This document shows positions 3,437-32,298 of a DNA stretch of 64,000 nt, piece by piece. The notes beneath the pieces are model-generated. The model did not search any database. It was not told where the DNA came from and worked only from the letters and a program-made list of their open reading frames with translations. Position 1 is the first letter of the stretch, and each line of letters opens with the position of its first letter. A program made the translations under genes and the position numbers. Source of the DNA: Lepidodermella squamata (Eukaryota > Animalia > Gastrotricha); NCBI GenBank assembly GCA_047495785.1, contig JBLDXI010000003.1:4216001-4280000 (forward strand), written 5' to 3'.

Positions 3437-4349
3437 AATTCAGCGAACGATAGTGACCTCGAAATAAGTGTACTTGAAGCAAGTTATGTCGCTGGTTGTC
3501 TTCGCAAATTTGATAACATGCCAACGAGCGCCACAAAAGGCAGTAAACAAGCTCTGAGTAGGTGGCATATGTCAGCGACTGGCTCTTTGCGTGCCGAAGC
3601 AGCTCACGCCCGAGTGGTTCGGACAAAAAACTCGGCCTCATTTGGCGATGAGTGACAATTAAGCGGGGTCACTTTACGTATGAGTTAGCGACGAACAGAT
3701 GGACCACCAGTTAGTTATACGCCCTCAATATATTAATTAACACGTGACGAAAAATGCAACGCTGTCTCGACGCTCATCATTTTACTTTGTGATTCCATCA
3801 ACATTTCCAATTATATATAGTAATAATTGTATATCAACAAATGTGCTTTTTAATGATTTGAATGTAATACATCATGGTAAATGCTTCATCAGTTTTCTTC
3901 TATATTTTTTTTACATAAATTATGTATCCAAGAATTTTAGTAGTAACAATATAACAGCTCAAATGGTCCGAAAAAGTCAACGAAAATTTCATTTTATATT
4001 CGTCTTCAAGGATTTGCAAGCAGAGAAATCACGTTATATCTCTTGTATATAAACAGCGAGAACTGAATGTTGCGACCATGCAGATCAAAAACGCAGACAC
4101 GTATGAATTTATTTACACGCCGGAATTTTAATAGGTAGCAGAAGAAGAGCAGAACAGCACACTCAGCTGACAGCGGAAATGGTCGCGTTAATACACCTTT
4201 GTATCAAGAATTGGAACAAAAAAAAGAATTTGAATAATGCACAACCCTTGCCATCACTCGCGTGATTCGTGTTTACACAGTAATGAATGGTGGTTAATGA
4301 GTAACAATAAATACACTATCGCGTTTCAAAATCTGCTGCTATCGCAATA

Positions 4350-6234
4350 TCAGTTCCATATCGCGTCGAACGCGTCACCCCGGGGAGGCGCCGTCGTCGG
4401 AGCGGCTGGGTTCGTTGTTTTGTTCGGGCCGGGAGGAGATTGTTGAAAGCCAGCGGGTACAAAATTTCCGGTCATGGCGCCGCCCATTCCCATTGAAGCA
4501 TAGCCTTGTTGCTGAAGTGAAAAAAGCGTAATCATAATTTTCGTAAAAAAAAATTTGCGCTCTAATTGAGGATCAGGCCTTGAACAGAAATTCACGAGGA
4601 ATTTTAGCGTAATTTAATTGGATTTTTTAATTAATCGTAAAATTCCAGAAAATTCCGAAACGGCATTCATGGCGAATTCATTGACATTTGTTTCCGCTAA
4701 AATTAAGACTTCTGTAAATTATCTGAATTATAGTTCTTACCATGGGCGGTTGCTGCATTTGCGGCGAAGGGAAAGCACCAAATCCACCGAAAGCGCTTTG
4801 CATCGGCTGCTGCATCGGCTGCTGCATCGGCTGCTGCACCGGCGCTGCCGGGTTGGCACCGAACGCCCCGAATCCCCCGCCTAACGCTGCCGGCGAGGTC
4901 GCATCTGAAAAATTGCGCTGATGGCCATGCATGCTAGGCGGCGAGGCAAAGGCTGACGACTGCTGGGGGAACCCAGCAGGCGGGGCACCGAATGCAGGCG
5001 CAGGTGTCTGCTTGTACAGAGACAGGATGTCATCGAGACCGCCCGAAGCAGGGGCTGCGGGCGCCGCTGCCTGTTGGTTGTTCATCATCGACATCAAGTC
5101 GTAATTCGACACACTGCGCTGGTGGTGTTGGTTCGGGTGGGTCGACGAGTTTTGAGGTGGCGCTGGCGACAGGAACGACAAGTCGTCAAACGCCGATTGT
5201 GTCGCGCTGTGGTTCAACGTCGGCGGTTTCTCGGCTGAGGAAGGCGCAGATGGGGGCGCGATTTGCAGCGAACCCATGCCGGCCGCAAGATTCGCATCGC
5301 TGGACGCCTGGATTGTCTGACTCGGGCCTTCGTCGAAGAAATCGATGATAGCCGATTGTTTCGGTTGACTCACTGGCTGAGCCGGGGCTGTTTGATGCTG
5401 TTGCTGTTGCTGCTGCTGGTGAGAGCTGTTTGGCGAGTGGTGGGATGCTGAGCCGCTGGTTGGTGCCGGGGGTAGGATGAAAGCGCCGCCGGTTTGACCT
5501 CGATGCCGCTCGTGGTGCGGTTCTGGGGCCGATGACGCGGTCGCTTCGAGCGGCTTCGGTCTCGGCGTCTCGAAGTTTATACTCCTGTCAACATAGCGCT
5601 TTTGCTCATATTTAGCGCGAATGAACTGTTCGAGCGCATAGTCCGTCTGCGGCCTGCGGAAATTTTCCGGCAACAGCGCTTCGTAAACCAATTTGGCACG
5701 CCTGTTTCCCATCTGCTGGAGGATTGAAACCTGGTCGTCATTCCTAAAAAAAAGAATAATAAATTGAAACCTTCCGTACCAAAGATGAAAAATTAGCAGT
5801 AAAATTACAAAAAGGAAAGCTAAATTGATGCATCTTGCCTAAAATTCTTCAAATAATTTCTCATTAACCGTCATATTATGATTGTTTATATTGCCTTCAG
5901 CCACCTTATTGATTAATTTCGATTCATTTTTAGGAATGAGATGTGAATTCAGCCTTCAAGCCAACTTAATAAAATCTCGCCAAGCCTACCATGTGTCGAG
6001 ATTGACCGATCTCACGCGGGAGATGTGAACGCCGAGGTTGCGGTGGATTCCGGCACACCGGATGCATAGGAACACGCCGATGTTCCAGGCCGCCCAACGC
6101 GGGCCTTTCGCCTCACAGTCGGCGCAATATTTGTTGTCTTCCTCTTTGAGAATGTCGGCGAGCACGATTTGCAAAAAGTCTTGCCGCGCCTTCTCGTTCT
6201 TCTTCGCAGCTGCTGCCGAGGCCGCAGATGACAT
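4350..6234 (-). CDS. SMAP1: stromal membrane-associated protein (SMAP1/2) ArfGAP
   Basis: ArfGAP zinc finger CADC…[22 protein letters not shown] and 'DDILSLY' motif; exons about 6234-5989, 5743-4741, 4511-4350. Confidence 0.92.
4800..4837 (-). repeat. 12-bp coding tandem repeat (QQPM)x3
   Basis: catcggctgctg repeated three times inside SMAP exon 2. Confidence 0.85.
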
Positions 6235-10014: not shown

Positions 10015-11538
10015 TCAACTCCGATGTGAACAAATAATTTCAAAATTAGGTGGTGAGTGAACGATGCCGAGAAGGCCACCGCGAATATCAACGGGCTCTC
10101 TCAAAACGAACCGGAATCTGTGAAGCATAGCAGTGATGAAAATGAAGTATTCAACGCGAGCCAGAGCCTCTCCCAAACAAATTCTCGGGCCAGTACCAAA
10201 TGGCATGAACTGCGACGAGTGTGTTAATAATTTACCGTCAGCGTCAAGCCATCTGTCGCGGTTAAATTCCTCTGGATTTTCCCAGTACTTTTCGTCGTAG
10301 TTTAGCGTTGAAAGACTGTATGCAACAAGAGAATAAGGGGGGCAGTCGTAGCCGCCGATTTTGCAGGATGTTTCTAAATTTGTATGGGTCAGTGCGCCTG
10401 GTACCAAACTGGAGTGGCGGAGGACTTCGCACATAACAGCGTCGATGAAAACCAGCTTCGGCCGATCAGCCAAGGTTGGCAAACGATCTGTATCAATGAC
10501 TTGGTCAATGGCTTCGTGGCATCGAGCTTGCAATTCAGGCCAAGTTGCTAGGTACAACAGCGTCCAACTCAACGCGGTAGCCGTAGTCTCGGTTCCTGCT
10601 ACGAAAAGATCAGTCATCGCATAGCCAAAGCTGTCCAAGTCCATGGCATCTTTTTCTAGCTCTGACTTGATGTAAATGTCAGGAAAATCCCGAATCATAT
10701 CTGGGTTAAAATCGCGCCGATGTATTTCTATAGCTGTGCGCAAAAGCTTGATTGTGTAATCCTGAATTTTTCGGAAGTCTCGGCATTGAGGCGCATCGGC
10801 GAAAAAGCGCCAAAATGGAAGTATGAGGAAAACAGCACTGTCCTTAGCCGATCTTGCTGCTGTGGTTTCTATTAAACCAAGAAGTTCCAACATTTTCGCA
10901 TCTTCGTACTGGAACCTGAAGAAAAAATTCATGAATTAGCTATTCCTATTCCTATATCAGAGATACCGTTTGCCAAATACCAATGAGCAAATTACATTGG
11001 AAACGTTGAGGCTGAGAAGCCTTTTGGGATTGAAAGGTTGCCCCACTCGAACTTCAAGCTCCGGTATGAAATGTCGAACCTCTTCTTGAATGTTGAGAAC
11101 CATCTGCTCTTTACCCATGCCGAAATCGCGCATAGCCTTCATTCCGAAACGGCGGCGGGATCGCCATTCATCATGGTTGGCTGACAGGATTCCAGGTCGC
11201 ACACGCTCGAATCCAGGTAAATGCTTTTCGATTCTCCAGCTGAAGGTCTTCGCCTGAGTAACCAATGTTTCCTGAATGAGAGCACTGTCGGTGAGAAAGA
11301 AGGCACGATGCTGGCCAAGATAAATTGTGAAAATTGATCCATACTCCTTTGCTAATTTTGGAATCAGCTTGAATCTCTCCTTCGAGCTTGACATTGTCAA
11401 TAACATCAATAAGTTGCCGATAAATGGCAGCGGAGTAGGCCCAGGAGGTAGACGGTAAAATAAACGGTCATACGCGATCCTGAAGGAACCATAGGCGATG
11501 AAGAAGATCAGAAGTATTCCGAGGAGAAAAATGATCAT
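10015..11538 (-). CDS. cytochrome P450, CYP2 clan
   Basis: PPGPTPLPFIGN, AGTETT I-helix, EVLR, heme motif FGTGPRICLG; one intron at about 10917-10967. Confidence 0.93.
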
Positions 11539-28582: not shown

Positions 28583-29622
28583 AGAAAGGAATAATAATAA
28601 ATAACCTGTAAAGTGATGACTGACAATTAGCCTGAAAAAATCTCCAGCGACTGAAATACTGCGATTGAAAATTTAGAAATGCAATGCGATTATTAGGCGT
28701 CAGGTCATGCATGAAGACAGACCTAAGACATTTGTTCAGTGTAATTTTTTCTTTAATGACAACTGAAAACTGAAAACACCAAATTCTAATTAACAAACAA
28801 ATAACAACAAGCGGGGGCAAGTGGAAGGATGGCGTAATACAAATGGATAATGGGTGGATTGATGAATAACCCTGTCACAATTTCAGCAGAATTGGTGGAG
28901 GAGATAAGGTTTGATCGCGAAAACATTACGCATAGCTTTGGCGGCGACCGTCGTAGTTCTTGAAAAATTCCGACTGACCCGGTCAATTGAATTTGACTTA
29001 ATTATTTTCTAAACAATGTGATTCAAATTCAAATTATTTTTTTGAGGTGAAAATAATAATTTCCGAAAATGCCGGCAATTTAATTTTTCTGGAATTCTGG
29101 AAAAGTTTTTGATCGAAAAAAGCGAAAATAAAAGCTTTTTTCTTCTTGACAAGTTCCAAACTTCGGTTTGCTTACCACCAATCACCCAATACTGTATGCC
29201 GCACACCGTAGTTATATCTGGTTTAAGTTTCGTGTAAGAAACAGTTTTAATTGTACTTTGTATCGCGCGTTTCAAAACTGAAATAGGCCACAAGATTAAC
29301 CATCGCCCATCGGCTCAACAATCATCGAACGTCTTGTTCAGAACTGCTCAGAACTTAATCCGGAGCTTTTTATCAGAATATGCTTATACTACTTTGAATC
29401 ATAACCTCGTTTAGAAAAATTACGTAGCGTACCAGGTACCAGCGCTGGTTTTCTTCATTCTTCAGTACTGATTCTCAGGGGATTAGAATCAGATCCTTAT
29501 TCATTTGGGCCTTTAGACGATTTAAGCCGCTCGAGCTTGAGCACTTTTGGGTTAATGTTCTAATTTATTTCATATTTAGATTCACTGATCAATCTCGGTT
29601 TTGTTATTATTTTGCAAATTTT

Positions 29623-29982
29623 ATGAGTTCTATACCTGCGACTCCTGCTGCTCCCCAGCAACCTGCGACTCCACAGCAAGCTACCGAAACTACTATCACC
29701 CCGGCTGTTGCCGCAGCATCTCAACAGCTTCCCCCTGTTTCAGCGTCAAATATTCTTTTCAATCAACAGCCTTCCTTTGTCGATCCCAATTTTGCTAGTC
29801 CACAGCAACACGCGACCAAATACGCTCAACTTTTGGCTGTTATAGAAGAACTAGGTAAAGACGTGCGTCCTGCTTACGCTACGAGTAAAGCCGCATCTGA
29901 GCGTCTAAAGCGAAATATTCAAGTTGCTAGAACTCTGGTTCGTGAGTGTCTTCTTGAAGTGGACCGAACTGTCAGAAAGTAA
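29623..29982 (+). CDS. CDK2AP1: CDK2-associated protein 1/2
   Basis: [21 protein letters not shown]…[18 protein letters not shown]. Confidence 0.92.
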
Positions 29983-31014
29983 ATGAAAACTGTGTGGGAA
30001 AGTGAATGGCCGCTTGATGCTGTTTCGGCACGTGTGAACACTTCTACTGGTAATATATTAGTTGCAGCGGCCGCGTATAGATATGAATCCACTTCTAATA
30101 TTCGAGCTGGCGGTGTTCTGTTATATGACTTGGACGTTACGTCGTCTCCATCTCCTCGACTGTCGCAATCGGCCTGTATGATGGGTGCGGGTGTTTACGA
30201 CTGCAGCTGGTTGAATGATAGCAATCATCTGGTAGTCACGTTAGCAAGCGGTGATTTCCTCCTCCTAAATTGTGGCTCTGGTAACTGTATTGCTCCAATA
30301 TCGAAGCTGAAGTTGACAGATTCAGCTGTGTTGACAAATATTGCTTTCAGCGAGAATACCAACGTGTTTTCTTGCGGCGATCACAGTGGCTCTGCTTACC
30401 TGATCGAAAGAATGCAATCTGGTCTATACATGCGAGCTACTTGGCGTGCTCACAAGGATGCGCCGACATGGTCGATCGCCTTCGACAACGAGCGTAATTT
30501 GGTCTACTCTTGCGGCGATGATAGCATGATTTTCGCATGGGATTTGCGGGAAATATCCCCCAACTGCTCATCAGCATGGAGTTTGTCTGGTCATGACGCC
30601 GGTGTTTGTGCTGTGATGCCGATTTCTGGCACAAATATGCTTATTTCTGGCTCGTACGATGAGACAATCCGTGTTTGGGATCTGCGTTATCACGGCGCTG
30701 GCACTTACCCTGTCGATACGCTTAATCTTGGCTGTGGCATATGGAAAATAAAGAAGAGAAAAGTGAACAACTTTTGCTATACTTTGCTGAATGCGTGCCT
30801 TGAAGGTGGAGTAGCTATCGCTGGGCTTGACTGCAGTGTGGGGAAATTGCATCTTCTCAAAAATAACGCCGATCCTGATTGGCAATGCACCAGCGATACA
30901 GACAGCAGCCAATTGGTGTATGGAGTTGACTACACGCCAAATGAATCTTACTTCGTCGCATCGACGCACAGTTCGAAAAACGGCACGGGCCGCCTGCAAT
31001 TATATTCCGTTTGA
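29983..31014 (+). CDS. DPH7: diphthine methyl ester acylhydrolase, WD40 (WDR85)
   Basis: WRAH…WSIAFD, VYSCGDD…WDLR, HDAGV, SGSYDETIRVWDLR, LGCGIWKIK, LVYGVD. Confidence 0.82.
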   Translation: MKTVWESEWPLDAVSARVNTSTGNILVAAAAYRYESTSNIRAGGVLLYDLDVTSSPSPRLSQSACMMGAGVYDCSWLNDSNHLVVTLASGDFLLLNCGSGNCIAPISKLKLTDSAVLTNIAFSENTNVFSCGDHSGSAYLIERMQSGLYMRATWRAHKDAPTWSIAFDNERNLVYSCGDDSMIFAWDLREISPNCSSAWSLSGHDAGVCAVMPISGTNMLISGSYDETIRVWDLRYHGAGTYPVDTLNLGCGIWKIKKRKVNNFCYTLLNACLEGGVAIAGLDCSVGKLHLLKNNADPDWQCTSDTDSSQLVYGVDYTPNESYFVASTHSSKNGTGRLQLYSV

Positions 31015-31175
31015 TTTGTGTCATTTGCTCAAACAAGCTTTAAGCTGCATTTTTATGTCTCTTTGTCGTTTGATGTATCTGGGGTTTAAACCCGCGACTT
31101 TTTGGTTACAATAACATGGTGTCTTCGACAAGTCATGCTCTTTATTTAATTTTTAGATTTTTTAAATCTGAAAGC

Positions 31176-32298
31176 ATGGCTAAACTTGACCAATTGGATC
31201 CACGTTGGATTGTTGAGTTTCGCCCTGACCACAACAATCCGAACAACTGGCATTGGGTGGAGAAAGACGCGTCTGAATGGTCTCGCACCAAGATTAAGGA
31301 GCTTCTGAAGAAGATTGTCGTGGGTGATGAGAAAATCGGCGAGTGTCGCATAAAAGACGTCACCGAGATTTCTGGTGACGTTACGGCAAACAACCGCAAA
31401 GGTAAACTCATTTTCCTGATCGACCTGAAGATTAAGATGGACTGGGAGGGCCGTGTCGGCGGCGACTCGACTGTTTACAAAGGCGAGGTTGTAATTCCTG
31501 AGTTTGATGACGTGAACGTAGACTCGTGCACGATGGAGTGTTCTGTCAAAGCTACCACCGACCCTGCGCTTATGCTCAAAGAAGTCATGCGTACGAAAGG
31601 TATCGATGCGGTCCGGGCTCAACTGGTAGAGTACTTGCGGTTATTAAGGGAAGAGTATAGTCGAGACTTAATTCTGCCCACGCCGAAAGATGCCTCTGCA
31701 AAGTCACCCCCTGTCGCGAAATCAGCCGCACCCGCCTCGTCTAGCAACGGCTCTCAAACCGTGGTTTCGGGGCAACAACCCGTAAAAATCGACTGCACAA
31801 GTCTGTCGTTCGAAGAAGTGTTTCGATGCCCGGCAACTCAAGTCTACATGGCGCTGACCGAAGAAGGTTCACTCAAGGCAATGTGCGGCGGCGAGGCGGA
31901 GGTGAATGCAGTGCCTGGCGGTCGGTTCTCCCTGTATAACGGTGCCATTCAGGGTGAATTCGTAAAACTCGAGCCTTTCAAGCGCATCGTGCAGCGGTGG
32001 CGTCTACGCACTTGGGGCAACGACGCGCATTACTCTGAAGTCACGATGACAATTAACGAAAGTAGCAGTGGCGACACTATCCTTCAATTGTCTCAAACAG
32101 GCGTTCCTACCAAATACTTAGAAGGTAAATTTATCTAACTATTTTGAGCTATTTGAGTTATCTGGAGGACTATATTTGGGCTCGTTATACAGCTATTAAA
32201 TATGTTTTTCTAATATTTCAGATACCAAGAACGGCTGGCATCGCAACTTCTTTGATCGCCTCAAAGCGGTACATGGTTTTGCGGCAATGATGATGTGA
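31176..32298 (+). CDS. AHSA1: activator of Hsp90 ATPase 1
   Basis: DPRWIVE, NPNNWHWVEKDA, NNRKGKLIF, C-terminal AHSA1 domain; last exon 32222-32298. Confidence 0.95.

Follow-up and report, generated by a model that had tools for sequence, protein, structure and literature searches.

The window, the whole stretch of 64,000 nucleotides of Lepidodermella squamata DNA that was analysed, carries the genes for CDK2AP and DPH7 one directly behind the other (Table 1). CDK2AP is a small regulator of chromatin, and DPH7 acts as an enzyme at step 3 of the diphthamide pathway. The CDK2AP stop codon touches the DPH7 start codon with zero spacer and in the same frame (...AGA AAG TAA ATG AAA ACT...), and both open reading frames are intronless, uninterrupted and matched to their relatives over their full length. 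This layout, described in an earlier note on the same DNA, was confirmed by the sequence and its open reading frames. A scan of the 121.2-Mb, 151-contig assembly detected one copy of each gene.

Table 1. Positions of the genes and sequence features around the CDK2AP/DPH7 junction in the window.
Feature	Positions	Strand	Basis and remarks
Ocnus/Janus family gene (PHPT1-like), 132 aa	28184..28582	-	Pfam PF05005, 8.9e-33; divergent neighbour upstream
T-rich acceptor-like site tcatatttag	29570..29579	+	Read from sequence; 43 nt 5' of the CDK2AP ATG
Putative 5' UTR, ATG-free	29580..29622	+	Nearest upstream ATG at 29555, 5' of the acceptor-like AG
CDK2AP (DOC-1 family), first cistron, 119 aa	29623..29982	+	Window ORFs; start ttttATGa (ATG 29623), stop TAA (29980-29982)
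TAAATG junction, stop abutting start, in frame	29980..29985	+	Sequence and ORFs
DPH7/WDR85-like WD40 protein, second cistron, 343 aa	29983..31014	+	Window ORFs (ATG 29983-29985, TGA 31012-31014); profile matches; 55% identity to P0001 (L001)
Spacer 3' of DPH7, ending in T-rich acceptor-like tttttag	31015..31156	+	Sequence; AG at 31155-31156
Aha1 (Hsp90 co-chaperone), first and main exon	31176..32138	+	Pfam Aha1_N 1.2e-31, AHSA1 1.2e-14

The order Ocnus (minus strand), CDK2AP, DPH7 and Aha1 also is found in L001, a 5.9-kb metagenome contig from ENA that represents a distant, gastrotrich-like relative. The Ocnus gene, the divergent neighbour in both sequences, bounds a putative promoter region of about 1 kb. 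A pronounced T-rich tract (tttttag type) marks the acceptor-like sites of the window, among them the ones ahead of CDK2AP and of Aha1 (31150-31156). The site ahead of CDK2AP reads as a candidate acceptor for a spliced leader or a 5'-UTR intron, and its analogue in L001 (tttgttttatag) lies 20 nt before the L001 ATG. The AG of the site before Aha1 sits 19 nt upstream of the Aha1 ATG; the layout of L001 is alike, with a 67-nt spacer. On the plus strand, neither AATAAA nor ATTAAA was detected from 29623 to 30746, the first occurring at 30747, and both are likewise absent from the stretch that separates the DPH7 stop from the Aha1 ATG. Judged from this arrangement, a larger operon may begin with the CDK2AP-DPH7 unit and also include Aha1.

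Elsewhere in the window (10015-11538, minus strand), two ATG-initiated open reading frames (193 and 305 aa) share a frame and are separated by 24 nt; they may represent a single gene interrupted by an in-frame stop or a short intron, or a further tight pair.

Identity of the two proteins

The first open reading frame matched the Pfam CDK2AP model PF09806 with an E-value of 1.6e-17 (64.9 bits; cut-off 26.2), and the whole-assembly scan detected this model at a single locus. The CDK2AP alignment contained 26 invariant columns and a conserved C-terminal helix region, and 11 of 11 sequences stopped at the same column. The last residue of the L. squamata protein is the canonical end of the family, as it is in arthropod, coral and Ciona CDK2AP; with the TAA at the junction, the gene thus terminates at its normal place.

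Pfam contains no DPH7 model, and the identity of the second open reading frame was tested through the ESM Atlas, the gene that follows CDK2AP in Daphnia and a search with P0312, a full-length cladoceran relative of the Daphnia DPH7. The protein has WD40 repeats and matches propeller profiles, and its 343 residues fall within the DPH7/WDR85 size of about 340-390 aa. Its nearest ESM Atlas clusters were those of 'diphthine methyltransferase' and 'methylated diphthine methylhydrolase' (0.97). Exon 1 of the Daphnia gene, the part compared, shares 95% identity with a protein that JGI names 'diphthamide biosynthesis protein 7'. The best match of P0312 in the 121-Mb assembly was this locus (2.3e-15, residues 10-314), followed by a runner-up at 2.8e-7 over 78 residues, and BLASTP aligned the open reading frame colinearly with P0312 across 308 aa. 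Generic matches were obtained in other searches: the PDB sequence search returned WD40 proteins alone, with no DPH7 structure among them, and a HMMER search of 1.8 billion representatives with a profile of the two gastrotrich DPH7 sequences was dominated by long multi-WD40 proteins. P0001, the L001 protein, was the only close relative in the large protein collection. By these comparisons the 343-aa WD40 protein behaves as the DPH7 orthologue, with a putative demethylation activity.

The identities that the earlier note had assigned to the two genes were thus borne out by PF09806, by the Atlas clusters and by the best match of P0312. Its proposal that the ATG at 29983 is probably the true start of DPH7 is likewise among the options favoured by the evidence; a Met-Lys start and an ATG right behind the CDK2AP stop are kept in both gastrotrich sequences.

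The gene pair in other animals

Comparison of synteny in relatives, suggested in the earlier note, found the pair tightly spaced in L001 and in cladocerans. In L001 the junction consists of a TAG, 6 nt and an ATG, and CDK2AP and DPH7 are in frame. Codon identity between the window and L001 at conserved residues was 0.37-0.41 across all three genes, a saturated background, and synonymous conservation did not rise at or near the junction or the proposed acceptors (one of six codons was identical at the end of CDK2AP). Saturated codon identity with no rise at the junction implies that the spacer has been held short for a long time and that no embedded nucleotide-level element is visible. The predicted fold at the junction also is not conserved: the window gave an unremarkable z-score of +0.45, and L001 gave -2.66 (140-nt stretch).

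Two further features were observed in L001. A stable predicted hairpin (1504-1559) begins about 11 nt past the DPH7 AUG and has no counterpart in the window; a hairpin at such a distance past an AUG helps recognition of weak AUGs. Downstream, at 3949-5318, a fucosyltransferase (Glyco_tran_10_N and Glyco_transf_10) is encoded by two open reading frames that overlap by 4 nt, which probably are one gene split by a frameshift or a short intron.

Spacers of similar length were detected in water fleas. The Daphnia pulicaria genome has 9 nt between CDK2AP and DPH7, and metagenome and metatranscriptome contigs of four other cladoceran lineages have 5, 6, 10 and 11 nt; the relative frames of the two genes in cladocerans are 0, 1 and 2. 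Two gastrotrich-like genomes and no fewer than five cladoceran lineages keep a spacer of 0-11 nt despite saturated synonymous sites, so the tight abutment of CDK2AP and DPH7 is beyond chance.

Transcripts of the pair were represented by eight near-identical Tara Oceans contigs (JGI, Logan) of a marine cladoceran, each with an uninterrupted 105-aa CDK2AP, 5 nt and a 352-aa DPH7. Three of the eight (L012, L015 and L017) begin with ACATGGGG, which we take for the 3'-terminal part of the SMART template-switch oligo. For low-input samples, an oligo(dT)/SMART kit was part of the Tara protocol (PMC5538240). A fourth contig (L016) has an extra 43 nt in its 5' UTR that resembles a retained intron. The oligo end, the 5'-UTR insert and the presence of both open reading frames identify these contigs as spliced cDNA with a capped 5' end upstream of CDK2AP, which indicates a capped bicistronic mRNA in the marine cladoceran. 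The first cistron of this mRNA (L012) contains nine internal ATGs, where 5.2 are expected, and begins in a strong context (gtgATGg). The nine ATGs and the strong start make leaky scanning implausible in this animal, and reinitiation at the nearby AUG, or a further, unseen transcript, is needed.

The spacing was wider in other arthropods. In an Artemia contig the DPH7 coding sequence begins about 35-45 nt past the CDK2AP stop, and spacers of 160, 496 and 1171 nt were found in the springtail Folsomia, in an Orchesella-like springtail (L058) and in a GC-rich, arthropod-like contig (L077), respectively. In the Artemia-like contig L054 (174-260), the CDK2AP stop is followed by a T-rich acceptor-like tract and then by an ATG one base out of the DPH7 frame; misassembly, initiation at a non-AUG codon or an exon further upstream could account for this. 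The Orchesella-like contig is mRNA-like (242-2234), comprising CDK2AP, the AT-rich 496-nt spacer and an uninterrupted 349-aa DPH7, and ends just past an AATAAA; it possibly represents a bicistronic mRNA whose spacer is long. Five invertebrate contigs (L002, L067, L068, L070 and L089) have same-strand DPH7 exons about 0.7-2 kb from CDK2AP. No DPH7 was found downstream of CDK2AP within flanks of about 2.5 kb in termite-like, Olavius-like (annelid) and Porites coral contigs, within 10 kb in Ciona (L100) and a mayfly (L101), or in contigs L003, L004 and L007. A first metagenome scan with a DPH7 alignment returned no matches.

In one arthropod DPH7 cluster of the ESM Atlas, 16% of the proteins contain a CDK2AP domain, suggestive of merged or fused gene models. 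No paper on a CDK2AP-DPH7/WDR85 pair or bicistron was found in the literature. The pair is ancient, much older than gastrotrichs, and shared with arthropods. Two-gene mRNAs are a known but rare arrangement. The suggestion that such a layout is unusual for an animal nuclear gene was right in part; against it stand the age of the pair, its presence in arthropods and a second TAA|ATG pair in the L. squamata genome.

In that second zero-spacer pair, the TAA of DPM3 is followed directly by an ATG (L102; contig 13, 3896268-3899537, minus strand 1770-1486). The ATG opens a short exon (MSCLVK), which is followed by an intron (gtaatg...tttcag), and the DPM3 frame of 282 nt contains no internal sense ATG.

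Translation of DPH7 and competing explanations

The 360-nt CDK2AP frame of L. squamata contains no internal ATG in any frame. Synonymous codon resampling of the same protein gave a mean of 2.2 ATGs and a probability of 0.049 for none, and every one of 4334 coding stretches of 357 nt taken from the window contained an ATG. The depletion is thus marginally significant at fixed protein sequence. The first cistron of L001 has six internal ATGs, where 3.9 are expected, and an ATG-free first cistron is therefore not a conserved property of the pair. Around the CDK2AP start, position -3 is T and position +4 is A, and the L001 start has C at -3. The DPH7 AUG has T at -3 as well. Inspection by eye of the final ~120 nt of the CDK2AP frame in the window revealed no UGGGA motif (TURBS-like, 18S-complementary), and with 119 codons the first open reading frame is long for reinitiation to be efficient. 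Public assemblies contained no exact match to DPH7, CDK2AP or Aha1 of the window in the look-ups made, and word searches of the protein collection gave no protein of the same species.

The explanation we favour, and consider somewhat more probable than all others together, is that one mRNA carries CDK2AP and DPH7 and that DPH7 is reached by leaky scanning and/or by reinitiation at UAA|AUG. This was one of the options listed in the earlier note and is the one the evidence favours; both the bicistronic mRNA in the gastrotrich and the route that dominates its translation are inferred. The two genes would form one old transcription unit whose single mature mRNA holds both frames, with its 5' end or leader cap probably at the acceptor-like site at 29579. 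Most ribosomes would initiate at the CDK2AP AUG. By leaky scanning, some would skip this presumably poorly placed AUG, traverse the AUG-free cistron and reach the DPH7 AUG; by termination-reinitiation, others would end CDK2AP at the UAA and restart on the adjoining AUG. In L. squamata, leaky scanning would be the main route to DPH7 and reinitiation a possible second one. The internal ATGs of L001 (six) and of the cladoceran (nine), with the strong cladoceran start, mean that leaky scanning cannot be the conserved mechanism. Lineages with numerous AUGs in the first cistron keep a spacing of at most 11 nt, which suggests reinitiation as the constraint that is older and shared.

The alternative that survives best, although we regard it as unlikely, is an operon resolved by spliced-leader trans-splicing at a non-consensus AG within the last 30 nt of CDK2AP (29958-59, 29974-75 or 29978-79), which would yield a monocistronic DPH7 mRNA. 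The CDK2AP mRNA would be cleaved inside DPH7, perhaps via the AGTAAA that overlaps the stop, and, as in SL1-type operons of nematodes, a primary transcript would give rise to either mRNA but not to both. AG dinucleotides do occur 4-25 nt ahead of the DPH7 ATG in both gastrotrich sequences, the AGTAAA hexamer spans the CDK2AP stop, and the unit is flanked by T-rich acceptor-like sites at 29579 and 31156, so the region may belong to an operon. However, the AGs at 29958-29979 have no T-rich tract ahead of them, in contrast to the other acceptor-like sites of the window, and the junction shows no excess of synonymous conservation. CDK2AP also has no canonical poly(A) signal, and the tight junction recurs in cladocerans, for which capped bicistronic cDNA was found. 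The internal acceptors named in the earlier note, cttcttgaag (29950-29959) and gtcag (29971-29975), are present in the sequence, but they are not T-rich, show no excess of synonymous conservation and look weak.

An internal promoter, with DPH7 transcription starting inside CDK2AP to give overlapping, separately capped mRNAs, is improbable. Lineages with spacers of 160-1171 nt, the springtails and L077, may use such a start. In L. squamata it would have to fit into the 360 nt that encode CDK2AP, a protein with a strongly conserved C-terminal half, and it leaves no reason for a spacer of 0-11 nt to be kept across phyla. The 5' ends of the cladoceran cDNA, moreover, map upstream of CDK2AP.

Readthrough of the in-frame TAA, with a CDK2AP-DPH7 fusion as the functional DPH7, is more doubtful still. 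The frames are continuous in the window and across the 6-nt spacer of L001, and the CDK2AP domain in the arthropod Atlas cluster would be consistent with fusion; two in-frame cases, however, are expected by chance at ~1/9. A UAA followed by A, as found here, is a strong termination context, the cladoceran frame varies, and an ATG with Met-Lys is kept right after the stop in both gastrotrichs. The readthrough fusion that the earlier note had entertained is accordingly unlikely.

Least credible of all is an artefact, either a chimeric assembly or a decaying gene pair: the published L. squamata genome was obtained from multiple-displacement-amplified DNA, and this assembly is most likely of that kind with HiFi reads (PMC11660948, which makes no mention of operons or trans-splicing), but both frames are intact, single-copy and conserved, and the same order and tight junction in L001, an independent contig of a distant relative, exclude a misassembled junction.

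Comparison with known systems

The bicistronic reading was compared with four known systems. Green-alga bicistronic mRNAs are read by leaky scanning and have a small first cistron, a weak start and a bias against AUG before the second open reading frame; their spacers are very short at some loci, with even overlapping stop and start codons, but often exceed 100 nt (PMC7896298; PMC11291117). The AUG-free first cistron of CDK2AP, and also of DPM3, is alike. Here, however, the host is an animal, the AUG-free state is not kept in L001 or in cladocerans, and the conserved trait is a spacing of at most 11 nt.

Termination-reinitiation at UAAUG-type junctions occurs in influenza B (M1/BM2), caliciviruses and hypoviruses. 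As in these viruses, stop and start lie within a few bases of each other after a long first open reading frame, and the cladoceran pair, with many AUGs and a strong start in L012, fits reinitiation better than leaky scanning. In contrast to the viral cases, the genes are cellular, no UGGGA is apparent in the first cistron of the window and the junction fold is not conserved.

Spliced-leader operons are found in nematodes and tunicates, and the SL1-type operons of C. elegans have no intercistronic spacer. The locus resembles them in its tight, same-strand housekeeping genes and in the T-rich acceptor-like sites before CDK2AP and Aha1. The CDK2AP/DPH7 junction differs in having neither an acceptor-like tract nor a poly(A) signal, and a stop that touches a start leaves no UTR for either mRNA. 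A search of the literature returned nothing relevant on trans-splicing in gastrotrichs or on termination-reinitiation in arthropods.

The fly CDK2AP gene presumably is CG18292. The Drosophila dicistronic genes catalogued by FlyBase (PMC4528330) are alike in being animal mRNAs with two unrelated open reading frames. The CDK2AP-DPH7 pair was not found in the supplementary tables of that study, where CG18292 is listed for UGA stop-codon readthrough with a 14-codon extension alone (PMC4528330, supplementary file 12).

Few animal mRNAs for two unrelated full-size proteins are described, and the mechanisms of their translation are mostly untested. The CDK2AP-DPH7 pair explains the fusions of these genes in some arthropod annotations and is a warning to annotators that a second cistron is easily missed or merged. 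The broadest reading, which we offer as speculative and rather doubtful, is that protostomes inherited CDK2AP-DPH7 as a bicistronic gene from their ancestor, more than half a billion years ago. DPH7 would then depend on translational coupling at a stop/start of at most 11 nt after an open reading frame of more than 100 codons, a cellular, virus-independent reinitiation that gastrotrichs and branchiopods would have retained and other lineages relaxed or lost. What sets the pair apart is mainly how old it is, together with the zero-length junction and the differences between relatives. The tightest possible junction, a first gene that is AUG-free in one species and not in its relatives, and survival across at least two phyla with water-flea cDNA make it a natural comparison of leaky scanning with reinitiation.
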